A stretch of 64,000 nt of DNA from Mytilus trossulus (lineage: Eukaryota). The DNA lies in contig NC_086376.1 in NCBI RefSeq assembly GCF_036588685.1, positions 22,506,001-22,570,000 of the forward strand, given 5' to 3'. Positions 1,207 to 60,757 of the stretch are shown in pieces. Under the pieces are notes generated by a model. That model saw only the letters and a program-made list of their open reading frames with translations. It searched no databases and was not told where the DNA came from. How positions within the stretch are numbered: position 1 is the first letter of the stretch; each line of letters starts with the position of its first letter. Position numbers and translations under genes: made by a program.

Positions 1207-1800
1207 TTACCATACTGCAGAAACCGAACAAGACCGTATTGATCTGCCACATTTCATGAAACACTCATTTAGGGAAAGATTATGCCGTATGCTGTTTCTA
1301 AAAGGTTCTTTTTTATTGAGGAAGGGAAAAGTATCCATTATAAAATTGAGAATGGAAATAGGGAATGTGCCAAAAAGACAACAACCCAACCATAGAGCAG
1401 ACAACAGCAGAAGGTCACCAACAGGTCTTCAATGCAACGAGAAATTCCCGCACCCGAAGGCGTCCTTCAGCTGGCCCCTAAACAATATATACTAGTTCAG
1501 TGATAATGAACGCCATACTTAACTCCAAATTGTACACAAGAAACTAAAAGTTAAAAACAAATACAAGATAATCAAAGGTCAGAGGCTCTTGACTTGGGAC
1601 AGGCGCTAAAATGCGGCGGAGTTGTTTGTGATATTTTAACCCTCCCCCTCTACCTCTAACCAATGCAGAAAAGTTAACGCATAACAATACGCACATTAAA
1701 ATTGAGTTCAAGAGAAGTCCGAGTCTGATATAAGAAGATGTAACCAAAGAAAAATTATGTATTGATTTTAGTCATTGAATAACATTTTTTCGTATTGTGT
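1207..1800 (-). pseudogene. foxQ2: FoxQ2-like forkhead fragment split by a repeat insertion
   Basis: About 1754-1795 reads KKMLFND*NQYI, then a repeat (~1340-1753), then MDTFPFLNKKEPFRNSIRHNLSLNECFMKCGRS; contains a stop and is truncated. Confidence 0.8.
1340..1753 (+). repeat. Interspersed non-coding repeat (AAAATTGAGAATGGAAAT... family)
   Basis: Interrupts the forkhead fragment; a reverse-complement copy lies at ~13860-14270. Confidence 0.75.
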
Positions 1801-2439
1801 ACTCTGTATAAATTTGAAATCTGTATACAAGCATAAATGTCAACTATATGGTTTCATAAAAATGTTGTTTTACAGATGTCTGTTGCAGTTATTGAAACAC
1901 TGGTCATTACCTTAACTAAAGATATTAGTTTTATTTCATTTATGTGAAGCTCCTATTTTTTTGTCAGGTTATGGCTATGCTTTAGGTTGGCTTTTGTAGG
2001 AATAACTCTTTGTCGTGTGTGTAATATTTTGTGTTTTCTACTAATTTTACCCCGTGGATCAATTAAGATATATTTTCAAATATTTCGGTTTCAAAAGTTA
2101 ACACATTAAAAAGCAACGCATTTCACAAACTCATTATATTTTCTGCGATTGTTTTGTATCTATATGTTAAAGTATATTATTTTAAATTGATGTTTACAAG
2201 CTGACCTCACATTGTCCAATTTTTTAAGTTATCATATCTCTAGGTAATTAAGAACTTACCAACTAAAAACATGTTTTGAATTGATAATTTGTTGTCTTGC
2301 AATATTTAAATACATAAATTATTGCAATATACATATCTTTAATAGGCAAGTATCAAAAAGAACTGAATCAATTCGTAGAAAAGTATATGAAAAATTCATT
2401 AAAAGGATCAAACAATATTGGATTATCAAAAAGATATAA

Positions 2440-2660
2440 GAATATGTGGTATGAGTGCAAATGAAACAACGTTCATAGTCATAATTTGGAAAAGAAAAAA
2501 AATATATATCAGAGTATTGCCTTTAACACGGAGCTTTGGCTCACACCGAATAGCAAGCTATAAAGAACAAGTGTAAAACATTCAAATGGGAAAGCCAACC
2601 ATCTAATCTATATACAAAACATATATAAACCACATCAACAAATGACAACCACTGAACATC
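2440..2660 (+). repeat. Interspersed repeat (AAGATGTGGTATGATTGCCAATGAGACAAC family)
   Basis: Related copies at ~47757-48170 (+), ~63405-63490 (+), ~29700-30055 (-) and ~39525-39770 (-). Confidence 0.65.
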
Positions 2661-3499: not shown

Positions 3500-3680
3500 A
3501 GGATTTTATTATTCAAGGCATAGATTACCTTAACTGTATTTGGCACAACATTTTGGAATTTGTGGTCCTTAATGATCTTCAACTTTTTGTTTGTTTTTAA
3601 GTTTTTAACCGTTAAGATCTGAGTGTCACTGGTGAGTTTATGGAGACGAAACGCGCGTCTGTCATATAAAATTATAAGCC
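3500..3680 (+). repeat. Hammerhead-bearing repeat, degenerate core (CTGGTGA)
   Basis: gtgtcactggtgagtttatggagacgaaacgcgcgtctg at ~3623-3661; flanks match 4385-4600 (-) and 61620-61820 (+). Confidence 0.7.
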
Positions 3681-5646: not shown

Positions 5647-7626
5647 ATGATTAATTCAGAGTCAAGCATCTATTATTTGACCAAAGGCTATACAGAAAGA
5701 GTCAATCTAAATTTTATTTCGATCGAGGTAGATGGAGTTTGGACACTGCCTCCTTGTAAAAGTGAAAGTAGCTACAGTAACAGTGCTGAATCTGTTCAAA
5801 AGGTATTTTTTGATGAGAATATCTTTAAACTTGGAGAGGTTTATTTCATATATCAAAAGAAAAAATATATTTTTTTTAGATACACATAATTCAGATTAAG
5901 GGCCTCTTTTTTGTACATCTTAAATCAATCCCAACATGATTAAATCATAAAAATATCCTATTATTGCCATCATGAAGTTAACATTTCCCCTTTGTTTAAA
6001 CGTTTTGTCTATGTGTTTTTATCTAAAAATATGAATCCATATATTAGACAGTTAAGGATGTCTGACGTTTCAGTATCGTTGAAATCTCGTTCTTGAATTA
6101 TTTCTTTCCAAAACATGTGATACAAGTGGAAAATATCAATGGTTTTTTAAAGTATTATAATCAAACATAATTCTGTGAAAAAACTGTATTTACAATGAAT
6201 AGTTTTTGAGTAGTCCAGTTTTCAAATTTTACGACCAATCAAGTCATTTTAAGTCAAAAGTTTGAGAAAATGGTTGAGGAGTAAACACAATAATTTTACA
6301 AGAATTGTGTACATCCAATGTCATTTTTGTCTTTTCAAATTTCTTCGATATGTATTTTGTCAATCATTTAAAACAAAAAAGTTTAAATAATATGCATTTT
6401 GTTCTTAAAAACTCAGAAAACCTGCAAATTTACAAAATTGACAGCATGCTAAATATGACACAAAAAAGCATCAACATATTATAAAACATTTTTATATTAA
6501 CAGCTACCTATAGCTTTTTTTAAGTTAAATTTATTCAGGTTGATCCACTTCATTTTTATTGAAAGTATAAAAAAAGTGTAATTGTGGAACTGGGATTTTT
6601 TTTACCGATAATAGCACAAGAATAGGTAAAAATAAAGAAAAATGTATTTTCCAATGGCCGTTAAATAATGAAGTGCACCACCAAATGATTTTTCTGTACC
6701 TATCATTTTTTTTACAATCTTATAAACCTAAAATCAGGTTTAGAAAAAATGTTTAATTCTAGAAAGTTTTGACTCCTCAAAGGTGTACATCCTTAAGCTA
6801 AAAGACAACTTAGTTCTGCTATGTGGCTCAGATTTGAAAAAAAATATGTAATGGTATTTAACTTTTTTTTGGTTCCATATGTTCCATTTGTTTACTTCTA
6901 TGATAATCATTATTATCTTTATATGATGGTTACCGTTCACATTATCAAATAAGGATGGGTTATCTTGCTGAGAAGCCATTACATTCGTACATTGCATTGA
7001 TTTCAATGGCAATACTAAGTAAACCGAACGAGAAAAAATACCGTTACTCAGCAATATATATCAATACATAATCGAAAATGTCCAATTCTAACACAGCACA
7101 CGGCATAATCTTTCCATTAACGAGTGTTTTGTGAAAAAGTGGCAAGTCTGTTAGCGGCAAAGTAAACAATTGGTCTGTTTATCAAGACTTTATAGAGGAG
7201 TTTGAAAAAGAAGATTTCAGGCGTCGTAATACAAGACACAGATCAAGAAAAATTGTTGTTAAAATAGTTGATAGTTCCTCAAATACCTTTAAAACCCGGA
7301 ATGATAATGAATATGTTCCTATGACATTGTCGCATATGGGATTATCGCCATACTTAATTAATAGACCGCTAACGTATACAACCACTTACAGCCCCTGTCG
7401 TGTAACACAGTATCCTGATTCTAGATTCGGAATGACTGAATCGAAATACCCGACGCATATGCAGTCGTTCGGAAACGATTAACATGTTCCTGTTGCTAGA
7501 AAATCATGGTCAGAAGGGCAATTATACATCGCAGCATCAACAAACTGTATGTCTTTTGTATTCAGACCGAGCACGAAGCTTGCTTTTTGTTCCTCTTGTC
7601 AGTTACAGACAGAGTGTGCTGATTAG
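5647..7626 (+). pseudogene. foxQ2: FoxQ2-like pseudogene (diverged)
   Basis: Exon 1 is 5647-5802 (MINSESSIYYLTKG...ESVQK, GT donor). Exon 2 remnant ~6930-7626 encodes EKPLHSYIALISMAILSKPN and RHNLSINECFV with frameshifts, a helix-3 deletion and stops. Confidence 0.85.
6052..6796. mobile_element. Non-autonomous DNA transposon with TTAA termini (Kolobok/piggyBac-like) in the pseudogene intron
   Basis: TTAAGGATGT at 6052 and its reverse complement ACATCCTTAA ending at 6796; accounts for this intron being much longer than in paralogs. Confidence 0.55.
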
Positions 7627-9539: not shown

Positions 9540-10795
9540 CTATTTCTGACAAGATGAATAAAAAGCAGAATTAAAACTCGGTCTGAATGTTAGAAACGTA
9601 CAACTTGTGGATGGTGCTTTAAATGATTCTCGACATGACGATAAAACCGCAACAGGAAATGAAGATCCGTTGCCAAACGACTGCATGACAGTCGGAAATT
9701 GCGTTTTTGTCGTTCCAAATGTAGATTCAGGAGGCTGAATGATATGGTGGTTGTTGTGACGTTGTGTCTGCATTAAGGATCTTTTCATTTCGTGTAGATT
9801 GGATCCAATTTGCGATGATGTCATAGGAACATACCCATTATTGTTCCGTGTGTAGAATTTATTTGATGAACTATCAGCTGTTTTTATAGAACTTTTTCTT
9901 GCTCTTCGTTTTGCATTTCTACGCCTAAAATCTCCTTTTGCAAATTCTTCCATACATGATACATGAATAGACCAATAGTTGCTTTTGCCGTTATCGGACC
10001 TGCCACTTTTCACGAAACACTCGTTGAGAGAAAGATTATGTCGTATGCTGTTTCTCCATGCTTTTTCTTTGTTATTATAAAAGGGAAAATTATCCATTAT
10101 GTATTGATTTATGTCGTTGAGTAACATTTTCTTGTTTGGTTTACTCAGTATTGCCATTGAAATCAATGCTACATAAGAATGCGATGGCTTCTGATTGATA
10201 TCACGGTAAGACAATTCATGCTTTATTGATCTGTCTGAGTATAACTGAACCTACAAAAGTAATAATAAATATTTTATAATATAAAACTAAAGATAAATAT
10301 AAGAAAATAATGAAGACATAATAACTTTTTTTTTGCAATCTGTGCAACAAAGAACATTTACTATGTCGCTTTCCTTTAAACAGATCTGTTAGAAAATGTC
10401 TGTTTGAGTTGTTATATTTCTTATGTTTAATAATATTGACCTAAAACTCTCTGAATTGCCAAACCTTGAAATTTTAACCAGACTATTTAGAAAAAATCCC
10501 TTCTTAGAGCAAAATTAAAAAGAAGCGGGCATTGCCAGTTTATTTATTGATTTATTATTGTTTTTAATAGTATTATTAGATGTACATCTTAAGAAAAGTC
10601 AAATAGCTTTATTGTTTTAATAATACAACATACCTGTGTTATAGATTCAGCACTGTTACTGTAGCTACTGTCAGATTCACTCATACACAGAGACGGTATC
10701 CCGACTCCATCACCTTTTCTTGAAATAGGATTTCGTTTGACTATTTCTGGATCTCCCAAGGTCAAATGATAGATGCTGAACTGTGAGTTATTCAT
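9540..10795 (-). CDS. foxQ2: FoxQ2-class forkhead transcription factor, copy B1 (2 exons, ~290 aa)
   Basis: Exon 1 10795-10634 (54 codons, CAG|GTATG); exon 2 10250-9540 (TTTTGTAG|GTT) in frame. Domain KPSHSYVALISMAIL...YNNKEKAWRNSIRHNLSLNECFVK...YWSIH...FAKGDFRRR is FoxQ2-like. The C-terminus is a few residues shorter than paralogs. Confidence 0.85.
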
Positions 10796-14270: not shown

Positions 14271-16015
14271 CTTTTTTACTAATTCTCTATTTTTAGAGTC
14301 TTTTGAATGCCGTTGTTTACTGCTTTCCGTTTTTTGTCCTTTCTTTTGTATGTCTGTTGATGACTATTAAATAATAGTTCTGCACTTGAGGGTGATACGC
14401 TAGCAGAGAAGCTTTACATTTTAATTCCAAGGCATTTTTTAATCGTATAAGCCATAAACTTCGTACATTCAACACTAACACACTGTGATATTGTGAGGTA
14501 GGTGCAAACAACCATTGGTAGAAAATGTGTTTGCAAAGAGATATACAATGTTCAAATAAAAGAAAGCCAAATATATGTTTGCAATAATCAGGTTTACCAT
14601 ATCGAAGCTAAGCATCATCAGCCTTCCCGAGAGAGTTTTATTACTAAATGAGGAGGGACTACTAATAGCCATAGACTTCGCTACTTCTTCTTGAACATTC
14701 CTTTGGTAGATGTTACTCAGCATAGCCACACTCATCTCCCACTCTTCAACTATGGTGGGTTTTGTATTTTTTGCTATCATTTTATCTTATGCGCTTTGTC
14801 AGTGTGCTGTTTGTTTAATACTTGATTGTTTTATAGTAATTAGGATTATAACACAATGTCGACTGTTTTGACATTTTTGCTTTTTGGGTCTGTTTGATAT
14901 TTTCAAGCGTTGTTGTCGATGTGATGGAATTGTGTGCGACTGTCTTGTAGGTTGGCAGTTTGGCTGGCTAGGGTACATGGTTTAGTCCACCATTTCTACA
15001 TAAGGGGATGCATTTTGCGCTTGTTGTTTATTCATTTGGTGTGTTTGAGCCGTTTATTTTGTCGTTATTTTTTTCAATTTGGATATTCCTCGGATTTCGG
15101 TAATTTTGCAATTTATCTTTTAATATTACTAAATACTACTTATTATAGCCACCGCATCTCTCACTTTTTCCTCGAGAATTAATTACGTATTGCGACTAAT
15201 CACATGCATAGAGTCGCCAATTTGTCCTCGATTATGATTTCGACCTTTTGAAGCCACAATTGCAACTTTGTTTTGTCGGTGAGAATCGTGTTTTACAATT
15301 TTGAGAATTTTTTTAATTATTTTATAGACTTCATTTTAATTGTTCATGGTTTTGTCTATCTCTCATGTGTTTTTAATTGCCCTATTCATAACTTCTTTCC
15401 TTATAACATTTTGTTAGAACCAGTTGATAACAAACATGTTTTTAAAATAATATAGGATAATTTAAAAAAAATTTGATAAATTATTCATCCATATTTCTGT
15501 GTTGTTATTTATACAATTTTAGTCAATACTCAATGATTATATTATTACTCAATAATCGCTTTATTTTGTGTTTTTACTTTTTTCTAAGCATATTTTCTGA
15601 GTCAATTAATATTACATTGGCTCGATTTTTGGTTTTGTTTGCCTAAAATTGTTGGTATTTTAAGTGGTTGTTGTTCTTGGTTAAGTTTGCGCGGTTATTG
15701 TTTTTCACCTTACTTTTGACATACTGTAACATTTTAAGATACACTAATTATTGATGTTTTCAGTGTGATTTTTAAATTGTCTTGTTTGTAGTAGACAACT
15801 ATGTGTACTGTCAACATACTTTTTTATATGGAAATGTTATTTAACAATATATATGACCTACCAACTAGTAAACATTGACATTTTACTCAGATCACGTAAA
15901 TTAAAGCTGTGAAAAACAACAGGTTTGAATGGTATATATACTGAACCAAAACAAAACAGTTTAAGTCATTCTGTAATTTACTCTCAGCAACATCGTTCCT
16001 TTCAATTTAGGAGTC

Positions 16016-17186
16016 ATGAATAAATATTAGTTGAGCATCTATCATTTGAATAAAGGAGATACTGAAAGAGTCAAACGAGATTATATCACAAGCGAGGGTG
16101 CAGAATTGTTGACACCGTCTCTTTGTACAAGTGAAAGTGCAAGTAGCAACAGCGGCAGTTATGAATCTATTCCACAGGTATGTTGCGTCATTTATAGCTT
16201 CAAATTTGAAGAAGAATTTCATAACTCGTATAAAGAATAGAGATAAGAATCTATGTAAATACAAAAAAATAATCAAAGACGACAAAATATATGCATTCCT
16301 ATATTAAACAATGAGGAGAGGCAACAGCTTAATCTAATTTGTTGCAATTACTTCAATGTACGATAATGGCGTTTTTATTCATTATTTTGTACTTTTCATC
16401 TATTTCTTTTAAATTTTCTTAATATTTAAATTCTGTTTTGTAGGTTTTGTTATCATTCGACAGATCAATTAACAATTGGTTATCTTCCTGCAATACTAAT
16501 GAGAAACCATCGCACTCGTACATCGCTATGATTTCAATGGCAATACTGAGTAAACCGAACAAGAAAATGTTACTCAACGATATATATATCAGTTTATCAT
16601 GGATACTATCCCCTTCTACAATAATAATGAAAAAGCATGGAGAAACAGCATCCGGCATAACATTTCCATTAACGAGTGCTTCGTAAAAATTGGCAGGTCC
16701 GATAAAGGAAAAGGCAACTATTGGTCTATTTATCAAGACTGTATAGAGGAATTTGCAAAAGGAGATTACAGGCGTCGGAATGCAAGACGAAGAACACGAA
16801 AAAGTTCTGTAAAAACTGCCGATTGTTCACCTAATAAATTCTGCAACCAAAATAATTACGAATATATACCAATGACATTGTCACACACTGGATTCTTCCC
16901 ATACCATGTAAAAGGATCCCCAATGCATAAAACCCCTCAAAATCAACATCAAAATCAACTGAGTATTCAGACTCCTGTATCGTCATTCGGATTGACACAA
17001 ACGAATCTTCCGGCAGTCATGCATACGTTCGGAAGCGATTCATTATTTCCCGTTTCGCAATACTCGTCAAAAGAGGAACCATTCAATGCACTATCCACAT
17101 ATCACACTACGTCATCCTTTAGACCGGGCTCTAATTCAGCTTTTTATTCATCTAGTCAGATACATAAAGATAGTTTTAATTGGTGA
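16016..17186 (+). pseudogene. foxQ2: FoxQ2 copy A1, recently inactivated
   Basis: Exon 1 16016-16177 has TAG at codon 5 (CAG in paralogs). Exon 2 16444-17186 has an extra TA in GATATATATATC (~16580-16589) that frameshifts the forkhead domain. Otherwise near-identical to A2/A3. Confidence 0.88.
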
Positions 17187-20265: not shown

Positions 20266-20404
20266 ACTTATTGCGGACATTGCCAGTTTATTTCACATAA
20301 AGACTTTACAATTTCTTTATTTATTAATCATTTATTTTGAGATCAGTTATAGATTTATCTAAAGAAAATATAAATATCTTTATTGTTTAAATGATAAAAC
20401 ATAT

Positions 20405-20565
20405 ATGTGTATTAGATTCAGCTCTGTTACTGTAGCTACTGTTATTTTTACTCGTCTAAAGAGAGGGTGTTCTTAATTCACCTTCAATATTTGAAAAAGA
20501 ATCTCGTTTTTCTTTTTCTGGATCTCCCATGTTCAAACGATAGATGCTGAACTGTGATTATTCAT
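20405..20565 (-). pseudogene. foxQ2: FoxQ2 copy B2: orphan exon 1 with promoter
   Basis: Homologous to 10634-10795, with a 1-nt deletion just after the ATG and a mutated donor; exon 2 absent (LINE in its place). Confidence 0.8.
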
Positions 20566-40264: not shown

Positions 40265-41280
40265 AGTATATATTTCTGACAAGATAAATTTAAAGCCGGA
40301 ATAAAGCTCGGTCTGAATGTTAAATACAATCTATTTGTCAATGGTGCATTGGACGATGGTCTTCATGATGGCTTAGAAACAGGAAATAATGAATCGCTGG
40401 CAAACGACAGCATGACAGCCGGAAACGGCGCTGACTTCTTTTCAAATGTGAATACAGGCTGCTGCATATTCTGGTGTTGGTTATAAAATCTTGTATGTAT
40501 TAAGGATTCTTTCATTGAGTATGGATTGAATCCAGTTCGCGATGATGTCATTGGAACATACCAGTTATCATAACGTGTGAAGAATTCAGCTGTTTCAATA
40601 GAATCCTTGCTTTTTGTTTAGCATTCCGACGCCTGAAATCTCCTTTTGCAAAATCTTCTATACATGATAAGTGAATAGACAAATAGTTGCCTTTGCCGTT
40701 ATCGGACCTTCCACTTTCTATGAAACACTTGTTGAGAGAAAGGTTATGTCGTATGCTGTTTCGCCATGCTTTTTCTTTGTTATTGTAAAAGGGGAAATTA
40801 TCCATTATGTATTGGTTTATGTCGTTCAGTAACATTTTCTTGTTTGGTTTACTTAGTATTGCCATTGAAATCATAGCTACATAAGAATGCGATGGCTTCT
40901 GATTTATATCACTGTTAGATTATCTATGCTTAATTGATCTGTCTGAATACGACTGAACCTACAAAAAGAATAATAAATGTTTTAAAATGTAAAACCAATG
41001 ATGAATATCAGAAAATGAGGAATTCATTTTGCTTTGTTCGCAATCTGTACCTATTTATCAAATGCATGAATTGATACATAGTTTTTGTACATATGTCTGT
41101 TTGAGTAACAATGCTGATGTTATTATAATTGATATAATATATATACTCATTAAATAAGATTCAGCACTGTTATTGTATCTACTGCCACTTTCACTTGTCC
41201 CAATTTTTGAAATAGAATCTCGTTGAACTAGTTCTGGATCTCCCATGGTCAAACGATAGATGCTGAACTGTGAGGAACAA
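40265..41280 (-). pseudogene. foxQ2: FoxQ2 copy B4 pseudogene
   Basis: Same ATG-removing deletion and W>L as B3; TAA at codon 13 of exon 2 (starts 40958); frameshift after NAKQKAR. Confidence 0.88.
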
Positions 41281-44803: not shown

Positions 44804-45982
44804 ATGAATAAATATCAGTTGAGCATCTATCATTTGAATAGAGGCGATACGGAAAGAGTCACACGAGATTCTATCTTAAGCGAGGGTGCAGAACTGTTTA
44901 CACCGTCGTCTCTATGTACAAGTGAAAGCGCAAGTAGCAACAGTGGCAGTTACGAATCTATTCCACAGGTATGTTACGTCATTTATAGCTTCAAATTTAA
45001 AGAAGAATTTCATAAGTCATCTAAAGAATGGGGATACTAATCTATATAAATATAAAAAAAACCAAAATAAACCAAAGACGAGAAAATATATGCATTCCTA
45101 TGTAAACAATAAGGAGAGGCAACAACGTAATCTTATTTGTTCCAATTACTTCAATGTACTATAATTGCGTTTTTATTCATTACTTTGTAGTTTTCATATA
45201 TTTCTTTTGAGTTTTCTTAATATTTAAATTCTGTTTTGTAGGTTTTGATATCTTTCGACAGATCAATTAAGAATTGGTTATCTTCCTGCGATACTAAAGA
45301 GAAACCACCGCACTCGTACATCGCTATGATTTCAATGGCAATACTGAGCAAACCGAACAAGAAAATGTTGATCAACGATATATATCAGTTTATCATGGAT
45401 ACTTTCCCCTTCTACAATAATAATGAAAAGGCATGGAGAAACAGCATACGGCATAATCTTTCCCTTAACGAGTGCTTCGTAAAAATTGGCAGATCCGATA
45501 CATGCAAAGGCAACTATTGGTCTATTCATCAAGACTGTATAGAGGAATTTGCAAAAGGAGATTACAGGCGTCGGAATCCAAGACGAAGAGCACTAAAAAG
45601 TTCTGTAAAAACTGCCGATTGTTCATCCAATAAATTCTGCAACCGAAACAATTATGAATATGTACCTATGACATTGTCGCAAACTGGATTCTACCCATAC
45701 TACGTAAAAGGATCCTTTATGCATAGAAACCCTCAAAATCAACATTATAATCAAACAAAAATTATAACTCCTGTATCTACATGTGGAATGAAAAAAACGC
45801 AAAGTCCGTCAGTCATGCATTCATTCGGAAGGGATTCACTATTTCCCGTTTCTCAATCTTCGTTAGAAGGGGATTCATGCAATGCACTATCATCATATTA
45901 CACGACTTCATCCATCAGACCGAGCTCTTATTCAGCTTTTTATTCATCTTGTCAGATACAAAAAGATTTTTTTGATTGGTGA
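44804..45982 (+). CDS. foxQ2: FoxQ2-class forkhead transcription factor, copy A4 (2 exons, ~301 aa)
   Basis: Exon 1 44804-44968 (55 codons), exon 2 45242-45982, intact; C-terminal half diverged from A1-A3. Confidence 0.9.
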
Positions 45983-48183
45983 AAAAACTTGTTTCACATT
46001 ATCAAGGGAAGGTTTAACATTTTTTTCTGCGTTTGAAAAATTTAATATCATCAATACAGTGACAAATGAGTTAAAAGATATATTGAGCAATTTGTATCAG
46101 TCTGCAGCGTGGACTTAAATAATTGTTTAGAGACAACTAGTTAACTTGTATTTACAAATAATGCCAGAAGCCAAATGTTTTACCTTGTATAAAATTACTC
46201 TGATGGAAGTAAATGTATGGTAAAGGATTTTAAAGAGGAACAATGTCTTTACTGTAAATATGTATATTTAAAATATCACATTTGATATATCATTTTGCTG
46301 TTAATGTTGATTTTCACGGAGTATTTGGTCGTTTATTTGCTATGATATGGTTAGTTTGTTATCAACTTTGATTTTGATTATCAATTTAGTATTTTAAGTC
46401 TCTCCTTTTGGTGGTTATCCATAACAACTTATTTTAAAAAGTAAGAATCTATTATCAAATTTTTTTGTTGTCTTTTACAAACAATTGACATTTTACGCTT
46501 TTTCATTCTTGATAAAATATTGCAACAACAGCAATGCTTTTGATCTTAAAGCTTATGAAAGTTACGGTTATGACACATTATTAGCAAACAAGCTAACATG
46601 TTTACTTACTGTCCTTTTAACCTTTACATTGGTTTTATTGACTAACTGAAAATAGTACTTACAACTAAGTGTTTATTGTACCTAGATAATCATAAACAGA
46701 AAAATATATTAATGAAATTTAGTTTCATTATCAATTATTTGTTTGACCTTATATTGTTAGGAATATGGTAAAGACTACTTCTAGTGGAGAGTCGTTGGTG
46801 AAGGAAAGAGTTTTTCTTGTTGATATTTTCTAAATGGAAAGGGAAAAAAATAAACCAAGAAAGCTACATACTATCTTCAACATTTAAGTATGTATCGCTA
46901 TTTATTACAAAAAATCAATAAATAAATTCCACAGAGCCTATCATAGAACTGACCCTCAAGATTTCAAACATGACAAAAACTATCAGAACATATCTACTTA
47001 TAATCACTGAATAGGGACTTTACAGGACATGCATTGACTTCGAATTTCTAATGTTTCAGGATTTGGATTTTCAACTTTTGTATCGTTACATTGATGCTTT
47101 GTCAGAATGGATAAGCGGTTACCATTGGAGCAAATACTGAACGATTATTTCATTACAGTTCATAATTCCTTCAGTTCCTTAACAAATACATGCACTTCAG
47201 TATTCATATATCATGTGAACGTACTGATAAAGCACTAAAAGAACTTTACTTGTTCTTGATTACAGGCAAATGATTAGGAATAAAGAAAAATGACATATTG
47301 GACCGATTATTGCACTTGGCTGTTTCAACATGAAAACACAATCTAACTATTTGTTAAAATATATGAAACAATCTAAAATAATGTATACTCTGTAAAACCA
47401 AAGATGAACAGCAAATACAAATTCAAATGTTAAAAATTCATATATTTTAAAAGACGTACATACAGTTATAGAAATGGTGCCGATATGTCTGTTTCGATTC
47501 CCAAATGGAGTTAAATGCCTATACTACTAGTATTTTCTTAATTTAGAAGCAAGAATTGTACACATGAACTGTTACTATAGTACAATCTCTCAAATACTTA
47601 TATTCCTTAGAACGATACTGTACGTCTACGATGCAAACGTATACAAAATGTACAGTACATTTACTAAACATTGTCATCATTAATTGACAATTTGTACTGA
47701 TTCAAAGCAGAAAAAAGTTAAACCCCAATCTAGATAATGTTATATAATATAAAACAGAAGATGTGGTATGATTCCCAATGAGACAACTATCCACAAGAGA
47801 TAAAAACTGTGACAGACATTAACAACTATAGGTCACTGTACGGCCTTCAACAATGAGCAAATCCTATACCGCATAGTCAGCTATAAAAAGCCTCGATAAG
47901 ACAATGTAAAACAATACAGACGAGAAAACTAACGACCATATTTATATGAAAAAATTGAACAAAAACTTATATGTAACACATAAACAAACGACAACCACTG
48001 AATAACAGGCTCTTGACTTGAGACAGAGACATAAATAAATAATGTGGCGGGGTTAAACATGTTCGCGGAATCCCAACCCTCCCCCTAAACTGGGGCAGTG
48101 GTATAACAATACAACATAAGAACGAACTATAAAAATCAGTTGCAAAAGGATTAACTCATCAAAAGGACAAAATACAAGTATAT

Positions 48184-48280
48184 TCACCAATCAGAAAACT
48201 CTTTTTATTTCTGAATTAAAATAAAAAGCGGAATTAAATCTCGGTCTGAATGTTAAGGACGTACAGTTTATGGATGGTGT
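48184..48280 (-). pseudogene. foxQ2: FoxQ2 copy B5: only the last ~30 codons plus 3' flank remain
   Basis: TATTCACCAATCAGAAAA...CTCGGTCTGAATGTTA...GGATGGTG matches 9516-9617; flank 47110-47750 matches 8850-9510; sequence then jumps into spacer DNA. Confidence 0.75.
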
Positions 48281-48959: not shown

Positions 48960-50685
48960 AAATAACTACAAAATGAAAAAATATTAAATATTTCGGATAA
49001 CAGATATCCTTCGTCGGAAATAGCACGATGTAAAATGAATGATATCGATATATTCAAATCGAGACACTATCAAAATCTTGAACGTTTATACAATTTTAGC
49101 GGACACCACAGACGTTGGTACATTTTTTAATTGCCAAAAACGGCGCAAAGTTTACAAAGATATGCCAAATAAAAATTGTTATTTACGATGTGTTCTTGCA
49201 CAACTCTAAATTTCCAAAGGTTGTGGCAGTTAAGATGTGATAACTGCATAGAGGGCAGTTATCAAACAAAAAAATCAAAAATGTCCTAACCGATAAAAGT
49301 TGGTATAATATTTCAAATTTGACAACGGTAGGGCAATTGCAACAGAAACTACATATTTAAGCCTCCCAAACGAATAGCAGTTTAACAATGATTCGAAAAA
49401 TAAGTTTTATCTAATAAGGTAAAATAATTGAACGTTACTACGTACTTTTACATCCATCCCCAATTGAATGGAGCCCCGTAATTTAAACTGATATTTTAAG
49501 ACAAAATCAAACTGTAAAGCCAGTACGGAGTTACTGGAAACAAGTGATGAGAGGAAAATGAGTGACTCATTCTATGTTTTTTTTAATTTATGCCCTCTGG
49601 GGAAACTGTCTTGTACTTTCTTATCCAAAATCTTTCCCGAGCGACTCTGTCGACCTTCGACCAACCTTCGTTGTGGTCTATGATTGTGATGGTAAGGTTT
49701 TTGAGATCAGCTTAGGCGTGTCCAGGTGATCTCAAATTACGACTTACGGGTAGGTCGGGCTTGCAAGTGTAGTCACTTCGATGACCATTCATGCGTTTAT
49801 TGATAGGCTGGTCTGTCTAGCCAATATACTGCATGCCACATCGACACTGAAGGAGGTATACAACATTCTGAGCTTTGCAAGTTACATTGCAAAATATAGT
49901 GTATATAGACCTAGTCGAGTGACAAGTAAATGTTTGAGTATTTAGTATTTGTTGACAAGTCAGATAAAGTCTGTTACCACATGACTTGCACCATGCTGCA
50001 ATTGAACAGGTTTTATTTGAGGAGATTTGAGGAGACGTCAGCTCTTACAAATAAGTCTTTCAGACTTTGGGGTCTCCGAAAAGCTATAACAGGAGGATTG
50101 GGAAAGATCTTGGATAATATAGGGTGTTTGGCAATAATTTGCAAATTTGCATGGATCAAACGTGAAAGGTTAGTAAAGGCTGGATTGTATGTTAGAACAA
50201 ACGGGACTAATTTGCTACGCGTCTTCCGTTTGTACTGTAAGAAGTCATTGCGGCTGTTATTGTTAGCTCGCGCAAACCCCTTGTCTATGCCCAGTTTCTT
50301 ATGGATAAAGGCAACAGTAGTATACCGCTGATCAAAACTCATAAATCAATGGACAAAAAGCAAAATCGGGGTAACAAACTAAAACCGAGGTAAACGCATT
50401 AAATATAAGAGGAGAACAATGACATAACACTAAAATGTAACACATACAGGAACGGGCCGAGCATCAGACAAAATCCCGCGAGAATAACAAATATAACATC
50501 AAAACCAAATACATGAATTTGGGATAGACAAGTATCATGACACATCTTATCGCAATGTGAATTTACCCTAAAAAAAGAGAATTATAACCTCGTTTTGTAA
50601 AAAATCAGCGAAGTTCCTGTAACCGTTTCGTGACAGCCTCCTCAGAGCAGCAAATCCGCTTTACTCTTAGAACTTGACTGTATAT
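48960..50685 (-). mobile_element. 5'-truncated Penelope-like retroelement (RT thumb plus GIY-YIG endonuclease), degenerate
   Basis: YSQVLRVKRICCS...KRGYN (50582-50682), PFVLTYNP...PPVIAFRRPQSLKDLFVRA, NVVYLLQCRCGMQYIG*T (~49810-49867) and RERFWIRKYKTVSPEGIN; interrupted by a repeat at ~50306-50582. Confidence 0.88.
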
Positions 50686-53272: not shown

Positions 53273-53705
53273 ATGGATAATTCTCAAATTATCAGCTATC
53301 ATTTGAACGAAGGAGACACAGAAGTAGTCAAACTAGAATCTCTGTCAAACGAGGGTACAGAAAATTGGACAACAGCTCTTTGTAAGAGTGAAACTGAAAG
53401 TAGTCACATTGACAGTGATGAATCTTTTACAAAAAAATCATGACAATAGCTTTTATTGTGGAGAGGATCCTGGAATTTTGTAATTTATCACAAGACTGGA
53501 GATAATTATTTATGTAGAAATAAAAAATCAAGCAAATCAAAGGAAATATATTTTGTACTATATTTATTTTTTCTTAATTTTGTTAAATATTTAATTTCTG
53601 TTTTGTAGGTTTGATTATCACTCGACAGATCAATTAACAAATGGTTATCTTCCTGTGATACTAATGAGAAACCATCTTATTCGTACATCGCTATGATTTC
53701 AATGG
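53273..53705 (+). pseudogene. foxQ2: FoxQ2 copy A5, truncated pseudogene
   Basis: Exon 1 MDNSQIISYHLNEGDTE... has lost its donor; exon 2 from 53609 has TGA at codon 2 and breaks off after EKPSYSYIAMISM. Confidence 0.85.
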
Positions 53706-56558
53706 TATATTATATATAAAATTATTTCAATTGAAATCAGGAAATAGTGAAAGAATTTATCAGAGTAAGAGACAACACCATGTATACTATGTCGAAACGG
53801 TATACAGAAATAATTGAAATATCTGTAAATATTTTAATTTTTATTGCTGTTAATGTTGATTTTTACGGAGTTCCTGGTCATTTATTTGCTATTGAATGGT
53901 CAGTTTCGTATCGAGCTTGATTGTAATTTACACTTAGGTATATGACGCCCTGTCCTTTTGATGTTTATCCACTGAACGGAATTTTATTTAAGGTAATAAT
54001 CTGTTCTATAATTTATGTTGTTCCCAGATCTATCAATATGATACCAGGTTGAATTAAACACTGCTATTTAGTGTTTACTTGTAGCAATGATTGCAGTTTA
54101 GTTCTTAAATAAGGTTAGCATTTTCATCATTATCGTTTATTAGTAAAATATTACTGATAGCGTTATATGATTTCAATATGGAATAGTTATTTGAATTATT
54201 GAGTGCTGCGATCTTTGAAGACAAATTTTGTATTATTTTTTACAAAAAATTGATATTTAACGATTTTTATTTTTGATGAAATTTTGCAAAAACACCAATG
54301 ATTTTGATCTTCAAGCTTAAAAAATTTTCTGTTATGACACATTATTATCAGCCAAGCTAACATGTTTACTTACTGTCCTTATAACCTTTAAATTGACTTT
54401 ATTGACTAACTGAAAATTTAGTTTGATATAAAAATATTTGTTTGACCTTATCTTATTACGAAGGTGATAAAAAATACTTCTATGAACAATTTAGTGATAA
54501 GAATATAATCGTACTTGTTTGGCATATTAAATGGATAGCCTAAGTATAAGTTCAGTATAAGTAGCAAACAAATATTGAAATCAAAGTAGAAACTATAATT
54601 TCTTTTTCTTTAAAATGCGGAGGGATTTCAACGAAAGAAAGATGTTTCTTGTTGGTAACCTCGTAATTACAAAAACGATCAGACATTTTAAAAATAAATG
54701 CTTCGGAATATTGAAATTCAACGATCAACGCATAAACAAGGTTCAAAACACAGCAAAATATTATTACAGACTATCACAAGATGAGTAAGAAAGAATAAAT
54801 TAATGAAGCTATTACTGAAAAAAATTATATGTCAACAAACGGACAATACATAATTTAAACAAATGCATCTAGAAATTTCGTCCGCGAAGAAAAGATTTTC
54901 ACCACTTCAGAAGGCATTTATAACCCAAAAATTGAATATTAAAGAAACAGATGCTTTTTTCTATTACAGGTCAATTCTAAATAAAGACAATACACATTAG
55001 ATATGACAATTATTGGCAACACATTAAGTTGATTGAATGAACAGATAATTCATGACAAGCACATTTGAAACCTACATATTTGAAATATGATGTTACATGT
55101 AACTGTTTTAAATATCAATAAGAAGTGTAAGACTTATAAATAATGAATAATATCAACCGCAAGAAAAAAACAGTAAACGAGGTCGTGCAAAACGATACAA
55201 ACCGCCGCCATTTGTAAAAATTTAAACATGGAACTCTTCGTTTTTCTAAATCTTTTAACTTCCACTGACCTTAAAGTGCGATAAAACGAGCTATGTCTGT
55301 TTCTAAAGAGTATATATTAAGTACTCCAATCAAACGATCCATCAAAATGTTCCATCCTCCAAAGCAATCATTCAGTTAGTAGTGAAATCAGAATGACTGT
55401 TAAACTTATAAGCTGGATATAATCACATACTGCTATACTAATATAATTTTTGGAAGTCAAAAGTTCATGATTTAATTCCTTTTATTCCGAACAAATCATT
55501 TTCTCTTGTTAAATCTGTTTTCCCGGTTTGCTGGATCAACACTTACCATAAAACTCGAAAAAAAATTAACAAAAACAACAGCAGACAAATAAAAACAGTC
55601 GAATGTAGGGGTAGGTGGTGGATGAATTTGAGCAAGCTTCCTTATCCAACGTTAGAACTTTCTACATGTGATGTATCATAGTGATGTCACACAGTGAAAA
55701 TGTCACAAACATATTCATGGCTAACACTTAACGAAATCTAAACTTTTATTGAACTTGTAATATCAGTAAACTGGCAAACACAAGTATCAAAACGAGTAAT
55801 ATTATGTTTATGCCCATTACCTGTGTTCTTAGAAAAACTCCAGCAGAAATAATCATCATTACACATTTGAAGGGAAAAAACTATTAAACGTTTGCAAATA
55901 ATCAACAAATAAAGGCAACAGTAAAATACAATTGTTCCAAATTGACAAAAGGTCAATTTTTGTAAAGGACTTGCAACCTTAATTCCGTTAAAGGTACACT
56001 CCAACTAACATTTGACAAATACAGCCGGAATATATCACTGAAACACGAGATAGGGCGCAGATCATACTCTCGTTGACTTGTAATCCCCCAGCATTGCTAC
56101 TGACGCTGTAAAACCAAAAGGTTCAAAGCATAACATAATTTTCTATGGCATATTTCCTTCCCTGCTTTCGCTAGTTTATCAACCTTATGTCGTTCGTTAA
56201 GCCCACTTTTTGTGCGGTGATTCATCTTTTTCTGTGTCTTCTTTCCCTTTATTAAGTCTTATATATTTTGCGTTCGTCTTATGCTTTCGATGACGTTACT
56301 TTTAGTATTCATGTTTTATTTTATTTTCGAACAAAATGCTTTGGAAACAAATAAAACAACCTGTACTGTCAACTGTCAACATATTTTCTATTCAACAATT
56401 TGACCCGTTAATTTAAAAACAATGCCATTTGAATCAGATCACTTGACTCAGAGCTGTGAAAAATACCAGGTTTTTCTGGTATATATTCTGTAACGCAAAC
56501 AATATAAGTCATTCTGTAATCTTTTCTCAAGACGATTGCTACAATAAATTTAGAAATC

Positions 56559-57740
56559 ATGAATAATTCACATTTAAGCAACTACTATTTGAACAGTGGA
56601 CGAACAGAAAGAGTCAAACGAGATTCTTTCTCAAGCGAGGGTGATGATATTTGGTCACCGTCTCTTTATACGAGTGAAAGTGAAAATAGCTACAGTGATA
56701 GTGATGAATCTATTGCACAGGTATGTTGTACTCTTGAACCAAAATATATCTAAATTTGGGGAAAAATCTAATGCTATATTGAAAGAATGAATATATATAT
56801 TTTCTAAGAAAAACAATTAGTATAAATAAAGGGCGAATACGTTTATGTATCAATATAGATGTATTCAATCATGAGCAAAGCAACAGCTCAATTTCATTTG
56901 TTGCAAAATGTCAATATTGATAATTATACTAACTAATATCATCATTATTTTAAATTTTCATCTCTTTCTGTTCAATTTTCTATTATATCTTTATTTTTAT
57001 TTTTGTAGGTTCAGTTATCGTTAGCCAGATCAATTAAGAATATATTGTGTACAGGTAACACCAACAAGAAGCCATCACACTCGTACATCGCTATGATTTC
57101 GATGGCAATACTGAGTAAACCGAGCAAAAAACTAGTACTGATTGATATATATCAATACATAAAAGATAATTTTCCTTTCTACAATAACAAGGAAAAAGCA
57201 TGGAGGAACAGTGTACGACATAATCTTTCTATCAACGAGTGTTTCGTGAAAAGTGGCCAGTCTGTTAACGGCAAAGGTAACTATTGGTCTATTCACTTAG
57301 CATGTATTGAGGATTTTGCAAAAGGAGACTTCAGGCTTCGAAATGCAAGGCGAAGAGCAAGAAAAAGTTCTGTGAAAACTGTGGATGGCTCATCTAATCA
57401 ATTATACACACGACATCATAATGGATATGTACCTATGACATCATCGCCAATTGGATGCCATTCATACTCGATGAAAGACTCCCTTATGCATACAAAACTT
57501 CACAACTCACTTCAAATTACCCAGTCTCCTGTATCTACATTCGAAATGACAATAACTCAATTTCCAGCAACCATGCAGTCATTCGGAAGCAATTCACTGT
57601 TTCCCGTTTCGCAGTCATTATCAGGAGGGCAAACATTCATTGCACCGTCCACATACTATACATCGTCATCGATCAAACCGATTTCGAATTCAGCTTTTTA
57701 TTCATCTTGTCAGTTACAGGAAGGGTTTTCTGCTTGTTGA
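56559..57740 (+). CDS. foxQ2: FoxQ2-class forkhead transcription factor, copy C1 (2 exons, ~297 aa)
   Basis: Exon 1 56559-56720, exon 2 57009-57740, intact; TATA at 56480 and TCATTC at 56509. Confidence 0.9.
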
Positions 57741-59603
57741 TTTCAATTTATCTCACAATACCTTGTGTGAGTTTACCATTTTTCTGCTTTTGAATAATTA
57801 AAAATTATCAATGCAGTGTTTTGCTGATATAAGTAATGATGCTAGACAATTTGTATACGTCAGCAGCGTAGACAAACATAATTGTGTTGACGAACTAATG
57901 ACTATTTGTATTGAAATGATATCTGCGAAACTTCATCGTAAAAGGACTCAAATGGACTTGAGAGCTTAGACTATACTACCAGTTTATGAAGAGAATTCTT
58001 GAGTACTGACATTTAGCTGGTATCAAGACTGACACTCTGGTGCTTTGCACCGTTCTTAATTTAACTGTATAAAAATATTAATAAAAAAAATTATAACATT
58101 TTAATTTTTTGTTGCGGTTTATTTTTAATTTTATGAACTCTTTTTGTTTTTTTCTCTAAATAACCATTCATGGCTTTACAATCTGTCGATACCCGTATCT
58201 AGGCATTTCACAAGGTTATGTTATTCCCTTACTGTATTTGACGTCTTTACACTAAATTCACTGCATGTTGGATGAGTACCTATTGATGGTTTAGTCTTTG
58301 ATGTATGATTTTTCTTTATTAGTGATTATTGGTTTTAAACTAGCGTTCAGTGCGTTCAGTAACTGCAAATACTTTCTGCGTCATTTTGTATCTTTTGGCG
58401 AATTGTCTCATTGGCAAACATACCACATCTTCTTTTTTTTGTACTTTTTTTACCCTCGAAATATCAAAAAATAATAAGCAATTACAAATCAATTACAAAC
58501 CAATCCTTAGAAATATAATCTACAAAATTCATAACAATAAAGGAAGGGGTCTAAATAATATTTTTCTATTAAACTATATGTCATCAATATATTTTTCGCA
58601 TCATTATCACCTCAGTATTGTAAGCAATGTAGAAGTATGTATCAGTATGTTATCAGTAAGTGTATACACACAAAGTAAAGGTTACAGCGACAATTTGTAA
58701 ACATGTTTCTTAAGGAATAACTATGTGTAATAACAGTAACCTTTGCAACTTTTGAGATCAAAATAAAGGCTGTCTGTTATAACTTCATCCGAAATGAACC
58801 TGCAAAAAATAGAATTGTTTAATAGACAATTACAAAATGTTCCATAATAGACTTACCACTCAATTATTTATAGAAATCTTCCATTTTCAAATCACAAAAA
58901 GCTATAAATGAATCATACCACAAATCATTTTTTTGTATTAATGAGAACTTAATCGGTACATATACTAAGTGCAAGTACTTTTGGAATCACCACTCCACCA
59001 ATACACTAAACAGTAACATTCAAATTGCACTTTCAAATGGTCCAAATTTTGATAAATAAGGGCAAACTATAAATCAGCTAATTGAAGTTATTTAAATTAA
59101 GAATAGACGCAGTGCATAGCCATAAACAGAGAACAAAAAGATACGAAACACATAAATCGATATCGAACTGATAATGCCATGGAAAAAACCCAAAAGACTC
59201 CATAAAATAAACAGCAACAAAAATGCATATGTTGAAAATTATTTTTATTAATTTCATATACAGTTGTAAGAACGGTGCCAAGCACCAGAGTGTCAATCGT
59301 GATAACAGCTAAATGTCAGTTCTACTTATAGACTCCAAACTCAAGAATTCTTTTCATAAACTGGTAGTATAGTCCAAACTCTCAAGTCTATTTTGAGTCC
59401 TTTCACGTTACAGTTTCGCTGGTATCATTTCAATACAAATAGTTCTTAATTCGTCAAAACGATTATGTTATTCTACGCTACTGACGTATACAAATTGTCT
59501 AGCATCTTTACTTATATCAGCCAAACATTGCATTGATAATTTTCAATTATTCAAAAGCAACAAATTTTTAAACTCACATTTGGTATTGTGAAATAAATTA
59601 AAA

Positions 59604-60757
59604 TCACCAAGCACAAAACCCTTTCTGTATCTGACAAGATGAATAAAAATCTGAATTCGAACTACGTTTAAATGATGACGATGTATTGTATGTGGATGGT
59701 GTAATGAATGATTGTCCTCCTGATAGTGATTGCGAAACCGGAAATAGTGAATCGCTTCCGAATGACTGCATGGCTGCAGGAAATTGCATTCTTGTCATTC
59801 CGAATGTGGATACAGGAGACAGAGAAATTTGATGTGAGTAGTGAGGTTTTGTATGCATAAGAGATTCTTTCATTGAGTATGGATATAATCCAGTTGGCGA
59901 TGATGTCATAGGTACATATCCATTATTATGTCGTGCGTAGAATTGATTAGATGAGCCATCGACAGTTCTCACAGAACTTTTTCTTGCTCTTCGCCTTGCA
60001 TTTCGACGCCTGAAGTCTCCTTTAGCAAAATCCTCAATACATGCTAAGTGAATTGACCAATAGTTGCCTTTGCCGTTATCAGACCGGCCATTTTTCACGA
60101 AACATTCGTTGAGAGAAAGATTATGCCGTATGCTGTTCCTCCATGCTTTTTCTTTGTTATTGTAGAAGGGAAAATTATCCATTATGTATTGATATATATC
60201 AATCAGTACTAGTTTCTTGCTCGGTTTACTCAGTATTGCTATAGAAATCATAGCGATGTACGAGTGTGATGGCTTCTTGTTGCTGTTACTTGTACATAAT
60301 ATATTCTTGATTGATCTGTCTAACGATAACTGAATCTACAAAAATAAACAGAAATGTTATAGAAAAAAAAACCAAACAAAAAATATTTAGAAATAACGAT
60401 GAAATTAATTAATATCATTATCAATATTGACATTTTGCAACAAAAAAAGCTGTTGGTTTGCTTATTATTGAATACATGTATAAATGTTAATATATTTCAC
60501 CCTCTATTTAAGATAATAAATATCTCATTTCTTTCAATATAGCATAAGATTCCTCTACCAATTTAAAGACATTTTCATTTAAAAATACAACATACCTGTG
60601 CAATAGATTCATCACTGTCACTGTGGTTACTTTCACTTTCACTTGTACATAGAGACGGTGTCCACAACTCATCCCCATCGCTTGAGAAAGAATCTCGTTT
60701 AACTCTTTCTGTATCTGTATTGTTCAAATGATAAATGCTTAAATGTGTTTTATTCAT
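59604..60757 (-). CDS. foxQ2: FoxQ2-class forkhead transcription factor, copy C2 (2 exons, ~297 aa)
   Basis: Exon 1 60757-60596, exon 2 60335-59604, intact; the most canonical domain (WRNSIRHNLSLNECFVKNGRSDNGKGNYWSIH). Confidence 0.9.

Follow-up and report, generated by a model that had tools for sequence, protein, structure and literature searches.

The 64-kb window, meaning the whole stretch of DNA analysed here (Mytilus trossulus G000:C4, NC_086376.1, positions 22,506,001-22,570,000), is very probably part of a tandem cluster of FoxQ2I (Fox-Q2c) genes that arose by local duplication from one founder and whose copies are dying independently. In most animals, FoxQ2 ranks among the uppermost regulators of anterior/apical patterning, and a genome usually has just one or a few copies of it. 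In the window, tblastn queries drawn from its forkhead ORFs and from database proteins detected 14 forkhead loci between 1093 and 60757, and M. trossulus RefSeq-derived proteins are 100% identical to window exons. Six loci are intact (C, F, H, J, M and N) and eight are decayed to varying degrees. Intactness was judged solely on frames and splice sites, that is, an ATG, a CAG|GT donor, an AG acceptor and a frame open to the stop. All two-exon copies have one phase-0 intron, located about 20 codons upstream of the forkhead domain, at the same site. Such an array is far beyond chance.

A previous sequence-only reading had arrived at the same counts of intact and decayed loci and at the same single intron position. 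Of the limits it gave, 1207-60757, the second coincides with the start codon (ATG) of copy N, whereas the first falls within fragment A. Its fourteen-locus array holds for the window, but the array itself is much bigger: the whole cluster comprises 35 loci in about 195 kb of a single chromosome (22,442,973-22,638,467), about 21 of which are apparently intact and 14 dead. The window represents roughly the middle third.

Genes, relics and the repeat unit

Genes F, H, J and M are located on the plus strand. Gene F (25064-26254) is composed of exon 1 (25064-25225), a 276-nt intron and exon 2 (25502-26254); H (36849-38024) of exon 1 (36849-37010), a 273-nt intron and exon 2 (37284-38024); J (44804-45982) of exon 1 (44804-44968), a 273-nt intron and exon 2 (45242-45982); and M (56559-57740) of exon 1 (56559-56720), a 288-nt intron and exon 2 (57009-57740). 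On the minus strand, gene C (9540-10795) has exon 1 at 10795-10634 and exon 2 at 10250-9540, separated by 383 nt, and gene N (59604-60757) has exon 1 at 60757-60596 and an exon 2 that ends at 59604 and begins at either of two neighbouring AG acceptors (60335 or 60329). The products of H, J and M are 100% identical to P0001 (XP_063435575.1), P0002 (XP_063431156.1) and P0017, respectively. Gene C is the RefSeq-derived P0018, the model of which has an extra upstream exon (14646-14780). The 304-aa protein of F is matched by length only to P0154 (XP_063435574.1), the sole other member of the 90% cluster of H. Gene C keeps its N-terminal FSIYHLT, ends about 8 codons early and is devoid of the C-terminal Trp, which in M is replaced by Cys; with these changed C-termini, both genes may be heading to decay.

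The decayed loci range from fragments to nearly complete genes. Locus A (1093-1387, minus) is a forkhead-domain relic, whose best nucleotide match (1241-1344, 104 nt) is 84% identical to J. Locus B (5647-7623, plus; exon 1 5647-5805, exon 2 6958-7623) is an old pseudogene with 77-81% identity to C, whose exon 1 carries 2 frameshifts and whose exon 2 carries 17. In the young pseudogene D (16016-17186, plus; 96% to H), codon 5 is a stop and exon 2 contains a +2 frameshift, so that the lesion load in the window spans 2 (D) to 19 frameshifts (B). Locus E (20339-20592, minus) is an exon-1 relic alone, with one frameshift and one stop; the expected place of its exon 2 is occupied by a 5'-truncated LINE-type retroelement (18004-20280, minus; RVT_1 reverse transcriptase, E 2e-25). 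Loci G (30537-31556, minus; 7 frameshifts, 3 stops) and I (40273-41276, minus; 5 frameshifts, 2 stops) are pseudogenes of the C lineage that have a 15-nt in-frame deletion in common but differ in their frameshifts and disabling lesions. Locus K (48220-48280, minus) is a 60-nt C-terminal fragment of another C-lineage copy; the remainder of the gene is deleted, and its 3' flank persists at about 47110-47750. The truncated pseudogene L (53273-53764, plus) has an exon 1 (53273-53434) with 2 frameshifts and retains about 99-150 nt of exon 2, containing a stop.

The repeating unit of the window is a head-to-head gene pair that recurs every 8-12 kb. The pairs are (C,D), (E,F), (G,H), (I,J) and (K,L). 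Besides these there are (A,B), which is older, and (M,N), which is inverted. The latter is a tail-to-tail inverted duplicate (55971-58154 versus 61344-59182, 81% identity). Self-alignment revealed a uniform 82-89% identity between (G,H) and (I,J) across about 9.7 kb. The remaining unit pairs are mosaic, with 88-91% on the plus-gene side and 72-77% on the minus-gene side, which means that the order of duplications may be obscured by gene conversion.

Turnover, selection and dosage

The cluster very probably started from one ancestral two-exon gene that survives as the founder copy at 22,636,597, a slowly evolving gene with one-to-one orthologs in five Mytilus species. It grew by repeated local segmental duplication, presumably via unequal crossing-over between repeats. 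After duplication, copies died independently through frameshifts, stops and deletions, and locus E through loss of its exon 2 beside a LINE.

In a full-length tree, for which annotated proteins alone represented the other species, the Mytilus copies all fall into a single clade (100/100), next to the proteins of oyster, scallop and Mercenaria. Several of its subfamilies contain three to five of the species M. coruscus, M. californianus, M. edulis, M. galloprovincialis and M. trossulus. Bursts restricted to M. trossulus are formed by F, H and J and, downstream of the window, by a group of eight near-identical copies, and the M. trossulus label requires 8 changes on this tree. Among the intact window copies, dS ranges from 0.07 (F-H) to 0.70. 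Pairwise Nei-Gojobori estimates of dN/dS, the comparison proposed in the sequence-only reading, are 0.28-0.48 for the whole gene, 0.08-0.26 for the forkhead domain and 0.43-0.63 elsewhere, the non-domain regions being fast-evolving. Shared and species-specific paralog lineages, independent lesions (as in G and I) and purifying selection on the intact copies support birth-and-death evolution, as had been proposed from the letters of the DNA.

The array could instead be kept for dosage, with near-equivalent copies that are co-transcribed briefly (maternally or in early cleavage) and homogenised by gene conversion rather than subject to birth and death. The oyster ortholog foxQ2-1, which is Cgi_FoxQ2I, is reported to have maternal and early-cleavage expression (PMC9539403), all intact copies retain the promoter block of the founder, the eight downstream copies are 95-100% identical with a period of 3.1-3.6 kb, and the plus-gene segments of the window are more similar than the rest of the units. 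Homogenisation is nevertheless contradicted by the window copies themselves, which differ by a dS of up to 0.7 and by about 35-40% at the protein level, and by the 14 dead loci among the 35; moreover, expression of the scallop ortholog peaks in larval stages. The transcript evidence counts against this explanation and also against the main reading. Among assembled contigs of public runs, none represents a spliced window-copy transcript; those from possible RNA runs cover only parts of H exon 2, and one of them extends 71 nt into the intron and may therefore stem from DNA or from RNA before splicing. Transcript-like short contigs are absent from the 90%-identity protein clusters of the derived copies but occur in that of the founder. 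Taken together, maintenance for dosage appears unlikely, and birth-and-death turnover is the preferred explanation.

Class membership and integrity of the array

The Pfam Forkhead profile (PF00250) matches the scanned intact copies (C, F, J, M and N) with E-values of 7e-27 to 1e-33. Positions 1-87 of its 88 positions are covered in four of these five; the match of N begins at profile position 10 because it was scanned from an internal ATG. The assignment to FoxQ2 made in the sequence-only reading was borne out by a forkhead-domain tree of 149 sequences with SH-aLRT support. A branch of length 1.74 with 100% support unites the array, the FoxQ2I anchors from the literature and the FoxQ2II-type and FoxQ2III-type genes of the same genome. 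The other 11 clade-I Fox domains of this genome, including FoxC, FoxD and a candidate FoxL1, fall outside; other Fox classes are represented in this tree by M. trossulus genes only, FoxC and FoxD alone being labelled via PDB matches. The array copies group with published FoxQ2I of oyster, scallop, Mercenaria and Lingula, and their nearest non-mytilid relatives are proteins given as FoxQ2I in PMC12828049. Compared by eye, the anchors P0037, P0049 and P0063 read as FoxQ2I rows of the supplement of that study, and P0031 differs from its row in one residue and the C-terminal end.

PDB matches point in the same direction. The array domain scored 107 bits to FOXC2, far below the level reached by true orthologs, which was 184 bits for the mussel's own FoxC to FOXC2 and 186 bits for its FoxD to Genesis, and FOXQ1 (1kq8) was absent from the matches of the array domain at E 1e-20. 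The CDD FoxQ2 domain (cd20035 / 410809) served as the class criterion in PMC9539403 and PMC12530298. Table S6 of the latter gives this domain, under the name Fox-Q2c, for cluster mates of the array copies in four species (M. coruscus, M. edulis, M. galloprovincialis and M. californianus). Sequence comparison thus supports the array copies as FoxQ2 of the FoxQ2I / Fox-Q2c subtype. That they belong to FoxI, FoxL1, FoxD or the class of C. elegans fkh-2 / unc-130, as automatic RefSeq/UniProt names would have it ('forkhead box protein I3-like', 'L1', 'D2-like', 'fkh-2-like', 'unc-130-like'), is highly improbable: these names conflict even inside one 90%-identity cluster, the copies join FoxQ2 with full support, apart from the genome's FoxC, FoxD and candidate FoxL1, and two curated studies (PMC12828049, PMC12530298) put their orthologs in FoxQ2.

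It is hardly credible that misassembly, whether by stacking of haplotypes or by false expansion of repeats, produced the array. High heterozygosity is a feature of mussel genomes and a near-identical block lies downstream of the window, but the window units are 9-30% apart in sequence (no two exceed 91% identity in self-alignment), are not all oriented alike and carry different lesions and transposons. In addition, independent DNA runs with two different organism labels yield contigs that tile 36.5-41.5 kb, mostly at 95-99% identity, and contain H, pseudogene I and the intervening DNA; the M. coruscus and M. edulis assemblies have 10-12 consecutively numbered genes of the FoxQ2 family. The stacked haplotypes considered in the sequence-only reading are therefore contradicted, and a tandem array remains the preferred view. 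The eight near-identical downstream copies could be partly an assembly effect.

Inferred activity, known expansions and meaning

The proximal promoter block of F, located at 24814-25063 (plus), contains about 200 bp that are conserved in the six intact copies and the founder. Part of this conserved sequence is a TATA box, GGTATATA, which precedes the ATG by about 75 nt. Judged by the constrained forkhead domain and the conserved TATA promoter, the intact copies are most likely working sequence-specific DNA-binding proteins. The N-terminal EH-I-like motif (FSIxxL), which binds the Groucho co-repressor, reads FSIDYLT in the founder, FSIYHLT in C, LSIYHLN in F, H, J and N, and LSNYYLN in M. Its Phe is kept by the founder and by the oyster and scallop orthologs, whereas five of the six intact window genes have lost it; repression via Groucho may therefore be gone in the derived copies. 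Divergent foxQ2 copies often have no EH-I-like motif (PMC9539403), and the loss is thus compatible with FoxQ2I membership.

A lineage-specific expansion of Fox-Q2c in Mytilus spp., the same gene family and genus, has already been published (Mol Ecol 2025, text and Table S6, PMC12530298), and the novelty of the present finding is therefore modest. Entries of that study (CAC5419380-89, CAG2198055-66, VDI15903-06 and XP_052098761) share the 90%-identity clusters or clades of the array copies. Its data set does not include M. trossulus, which has at least 21 intact copies; its main text devotes one sentence to a 'putative lineage-specific expansion', without the word 'tandem', and it does not describe pseudogenes, a repeat unit, a founder copy or selection among paralogs. 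The extent of the 35-locus cluster, the head-to-head pair unit and the slowly evolving founder copy are new details.

The FoxQ2I family as defined in PMC12828049 (Commun Biol 2025) comprises oyster FoxQ2a, scallop FoxQ2I-2, Mercenaria FoxQ2I-1, Dreissena FoxQ2I-1/2 and Lingula FoxQ2I. Its proteins are colinear with those of the array from the N-terminal FSIxxL to the C-terminal Trp. Both have ES-I-A-x-V/LLSLD-type residues around the intron site and a forkhead domain of the KPxHSYIA(L/M)ISMAILS...NNKEKAWRNSIRHNLSLNECF type, followed by a GYVPMTSS motif. The location of FoxQ2I and the FoxQ2II-type gene on one M. trossulus chromosome agrees with the linkage claimed in that study. However, its species have one to four FoxQ2I copies compared with 35 loci in the array, and the derived array copies, unlike the family, have mostly lost the N-terminal Phe and evolve faster than the founder. 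Annelid foxQ2 expansions (Owenia fusiformis 11, Lamellibrachia luymesi 10, Paraescarpia echinospica 13; PMC9539403) likewise show paralog relationships that track genomic linkage, but they are independent, belong to another phylum and comprise fewer copies. The Owenia paralogs have documented expression at the animal pole of early embryos (PMC9539403).

With 35 loci, 21 of them intact, the cluster exceeds the largest foxQ2 count in the compared literature (13, in a tubeworm). Between Mytilus species, the number of annotated copies ranges from 2 (M. californianus) up to 21 or more (M. trossulus). The idea that the derived copies form a multicopy, dosage-amplified battery, active maternally or during cleavage and either acting without Groucho or competing for the binding sites of the founder FoxQ2I, is quite improbable. 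If true, such a battery would constitute a quickly turning-over regulatory layer of early development and might bear on hybrid incompatibility in the M. edulis species complex. The RefSeq names of the array genes (I3-like, fkh-2-like, D2-like, unc-130-like, L1) are inconsistent and should be FoxQ2, and studies of expression and evolution in mussels need to treat the founder and the derived copies separately. With intact and dead copies of graded ages side by side, the cluster offers a clean case of a developmental regulator behaving as a fast-turnover multigene family.

Gene loci and repeat unit in the window

The window (G000:C4:22,506,001-22,570,000) is AT-rich animal DNA (31% G+C) on a chromosome of 96.3 Mb, C4. 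Forkhead-domain reading frames on both strands emerge from an ORF listing and from tblastn queried with forkhead ORFs of the window itself, and the intact window copies scanned match the Pfam Forkhead model with E values from 7e-27 to 1e-33. Exon 2 of one copy, compared with the protein collection, finds Mytilus proteins as matches, and the RefSeq-derived M. trossulus proteins P0001, P0002, P0017 and P0018 (from loci H, J, M and C) are 100% identical to window exons. Mapped back to the window, full-length proteins reveal a two-exon gene. Exon 1 encodes 54-55 residues and is followed by a phase 0 intron of 260-383 nt with a CAG/GT donor and an AG acceptor; exon 2 encodes approximately 236-250 residues and starts about 20 codons upstream of the forkhead domain. 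For alignment, dN/dS and trees, exons were joined only in scripts, from the window and locus sequences, while searches used exon 2 or database proteins.

The sequence-only reading had described 14 forkhead loci, six intact and eight decayed, with one shared intron; protein mapping and tblastn bear out these counts, the intron and all coordinates. In loci C, F, H, J, M and N the start codon is retained, the two splice sites are present and the frame is open. The degree of decay in the other eight varies widely. D, at 96% identity to H, carries two lesions, and L, G, I and B range from three lesions (L, which is truncated) to 19 frameshifts (B). Of E, exon 1 alone is left; the LINE adjoining it is 5'-truncated and carries an RVT_1 reverse transcriptase. 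A is reduced to a fragment of 104 nt and K to one of 60 nt. An origin as retrocopies is rejected, because the intron is kept in all copies that have both exons.

Two RefSeq models contain an extra upstream coding exon several kb away. That of C (P0018) lies at window 14646-14780 (minus strand) and that of the copy at 22499032 (P0019) at G000:C4:22493501-22493626 (plus strand), directly behind the preceding array copy. These exons could be real 5' exons, read-through from a neighbour or annotation artefacts.

According to the self-alignment of the window, the repeat is not a single gene but a head-to-head pair, consisting of a minus-strand C-lineage copy and a plus-strand F-lineage copy about 5.5 kb apart. 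The pairs (C,D), (E,F), (G,H), (I,J) and (K,L) recur every 8-12 kb, and none has both members intact. Units (G,H) and (I,J) are 82-89% identical over about 9.7 kb, a match that implies a single whole-unit duplication. Other unit pairs are mosaic: they are 88-91% identical on the side of the plus-strand gene and 72-77% identical on that of the minus-strand gene, a pattern that suggests additional exchanges or gene conversion. M and N, inverted duplicates arranged tail to tail (81%), are members of the family occupying the cluster's downstream part, and A and B are relics of greater age.

Haplotypes stacked by the assembler are rejected as an explanation of the array, as the units differ by 9-30%. 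Two DNA runs whose organism labels differ provide contigs that tile 36.5-41.5 kb at mostly 95-99% identity; these contigs include H, pseudogene I and the spacer between them, evidence against an assembly artefact. The H-I spacer also holds a short interspersed repeat of extreme copy number (window 39506-39839), probably a SINE or MITE; summed over contigs, its depth comes to about 1e5 in DNA runs and to thousands in possible RNA runs, and loose ends are numerous. Within the decayed (K,L) unit, the spacer contains a 109-residue ORF (window 50013-50342, minus strand, overlapping 49930-50331 on the plus strand), which has no Pfam match at E 0.001 and looks like a mobile-element fragment.

Assignment to FoxQ2I

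FoxQ2I, II and III proteins of many animals are tabulated in the supplementary data of PMC12828049. Four of the best non-mytilid matches of the array agree by eye with its FoxQ2I rows: Mercenaria P0037, scallop P0049 and Lingula P0063 show no difference, and a single residue and the C-terminal end set oyster P0031 apart. Through the same table, a FoxQ2II-type gene of M. trossulus was recognised at C4:66.47 Mb and a FoxQ2III-type gene at C1:46.54 Mb. Both are single genes (G000:C4:66475252-66475500, locus sequence L017, and G000:C1:46542775-46543023, L020). The FoxQ2II-type gene shares its chromosome with the FoxQ2I array, 44 Mb away, which fits the ancestral linkage proposed in PMC12828049.

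The domain tree comprises 149 forkhead domains: the array copies, the 13 other clade-I domains of the genome and 106 database matches, other Fox classes being represented by the M. trossulus genome's own genes. A branch of length 1.74 with 100% SH-aLRT unites the array with the FoxQ2I anchors (the four non-mytilid proteins) and the FoxQ2II/III-type genes, and leaves out the genome's 11 remaining clade-I domains. In searches of the PDB, two of these 11 are identified as FoxC (184 bits to FOXC2) and FoxD (186 bits to Genesis); the best score of the array domain against a solved forkhead is 107 bits, and its matches at E 1e-20 do not include FOXQ1. As the PDB holds no FoxQ2 structure, these searches only exclude classes, namely FoxC, FoxD, FoxL2, FoxA, FoxG and FoxQ1. 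In addition, Table S6 of PMC12530298 lists proteins from the array copies' 90%-identity clusters or clades as "Fox-Q2c, Forkhead domain Q2 (CDD 410809)". Membership of another Fox class is rejected, being contradicted by the domain tree and two curated studies. The FoxQ2 assignment first made from the sequence alone is upheld; more precisely, the array copies are FoxQ2I, alias Fox-Q2c.

The FoxQ2I-like sequences in the domain tree also include four Patella caerulea proteins with consecutive tags, SNE40_005055-58 (P0040, P0043, P0052 and P0053), and two Haliotis proteins (P0047 and P0050). Gastropods are without FoxQ2I according to PMC12828049. Judging from these sequences, FoxQ2I may have been retained in early-branching gastropods, and the Patella genes are possibly a small tandem array.

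Extent and history of the cluster

The whole assembly was searched with one protein and the Pfam model, and flanks were then added. Array copies span C4:22,442,973 to 22,638,467. The cluster contains 35 array-type loci, 21 with both exons open and 14 decayed or doubtful. Downstream of the window, eight copies with 95-100% mutual protein identity follow each other with a period of 3.1-3.6 kb. A very regular run of copies occupies G000:C4:22585698-22630345 (L009-L014), two of them identical in protein; the 3.1-3.6 kb run reflects either very recent amplification or, in part, the assembly.

About 14 kb past the last array copy, at 22,651,902, lies a gene of the second bivalve FoxQ2I subtype, so that the two FoxQ2I subtypes are linked in the M. 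trossulus genome. The gene (G000:C4:22651902-22652378; L016:1902-2378, plus strand) resembles scallop FoxQ2I-1 and Dreissena FoxQ2I-3/4 (KPGMSYIALISLAIQSS...VRKCDEELQKL) and sits in an open frame of 296 residues.

A full-length tree combined the proteins of the 21 intact M. trossulus copies with 26 from four other Mytilus species and with those of oyster, scallop and Mercenaria. All Mytilus copies form a single clade (support 100/100). Within it, the branches of one subgroup are very short, and its sole M. trossulus member, the copy at 22,636,597, is named the founder here; the other array copies are called derived. M. coruscus, M. californianus and M. galloprovincialis each contribute a single protein to the founder subgroup, and M. 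edulis contributes three near-identical entries that come from two assemblies. Other subfamilies comprise three to five species each, which makes the array older than the split of these Mytilus species. F/H/J and the eight near-identical copies are bursts confined to M. trossulus, and C forms a long orphan branch.

Synonymous divergence among the window copies ranges from 0.07 (F-H) to 0.70. G and I share a 15-nt in-frame deletion, but their frameshifts differ; the frame was probably still intact in their common ancestor, with each copy inactivated independently. This history fits the pattern expected under birth-and-death evolution, as the sequence-only reading had claimed: subfamilies extend across species, bursts are specific to M. 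trossulus, decay is graded, and G and I have separate frameshifts.

Constraint, expression and significance

Among the intact copies, pairwise Nei-Gojobori dN/dS is 0.28-0.48 for the whole gene; it is lowest in the forkhead domain (0.08-0.26) and reaches 0.43-0.63 outside it. A stretch of about 200 bp that precedes the ATG and contains a TATA box can be aligned across the six intact copies and the founder, despite synonymous divergence of up to 0.7 in the genes. DNA-binding function and promoter thus appear maintained, and the rest of the protein appears relaxed. In F (window 25694-25720), H (37476-37502) and also D, recognition helix 3 reads RHNISIN, a lineage-specific change in an otherwise constrained segment; the outgroups and the other 20 intact array copies, except M (RHNLSIN), have RHNLSLN.

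The founder shares with the proteins of oyster, scallop, Mercenaria and Lingula an N-terminal motif of the FSIxxL type (FSIDYLT, FSIDFLT, FSIDFIT, FSIESLT), termed EH-I-like in PMC9539403. The motif is FSIYHLT in C, LSIYHLN in F, H, J and N, and LSNYYLN in M. The Phe of EH-I-like motifs contacts the Groucho co-repressor, and because this residue mediates binding, the interaction with Groucho may have been lost in derived copies.

For the founder protein cluster, Logan contigs of 1141 and 1524 bp encode the entire 297-residue protein. With a genomic intron of 908 nt, these lengths imply spliced founder transcripts. No such transcript-like contigs were found for the 90%-identity protein clusters of the derived copies. 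Among the sequencing runs found, none is recorded as RNA; two possible RNA runs yield short contigs on exon 2 of H only, one extending 71 nt into the intron, and no splicing was seen in them. The single-copy ortholog of oyster is reported to be expressed maternally and in early cleavage, and that of scallop to have a larval expression peak (PMC9539403). The array may perhaps serve dosage in early embryos, a suggestion of the sequence-only reading.

In Spiralia, foxQ2 has expanded repeatedly; three annelids have 10-13 copies and oyster has three (PMC9539403). FoxQ2I is described in PMC12828049, which does not mention Mytilus, as "often in high copy number" in spiralians. A putative lineage-specific Fox-Q2c expansion in Mytilus spp. 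is reported in PMC12530298, whose table contains series of genes with consecutive numbers in M. coruscus and M. edulis; its data do not include M. trossulus, and the word "tandem" is absent from its main text. The Mytilus expansion itself is thus already published. New here are the size of the expansion in M. trossulus, its complement of pseudogenes, the unit of inverted gene pairs, the separation of the founder from the derived copies, the pattern of selection and the decay of the N-terminal motif. The array is real, its initial interpretation was right, and it is a well-preserved example of a known phenomenon. The finding is at present of moderate interest, which would be greater if the derived copies were a co-expressed early-embryonic battery.
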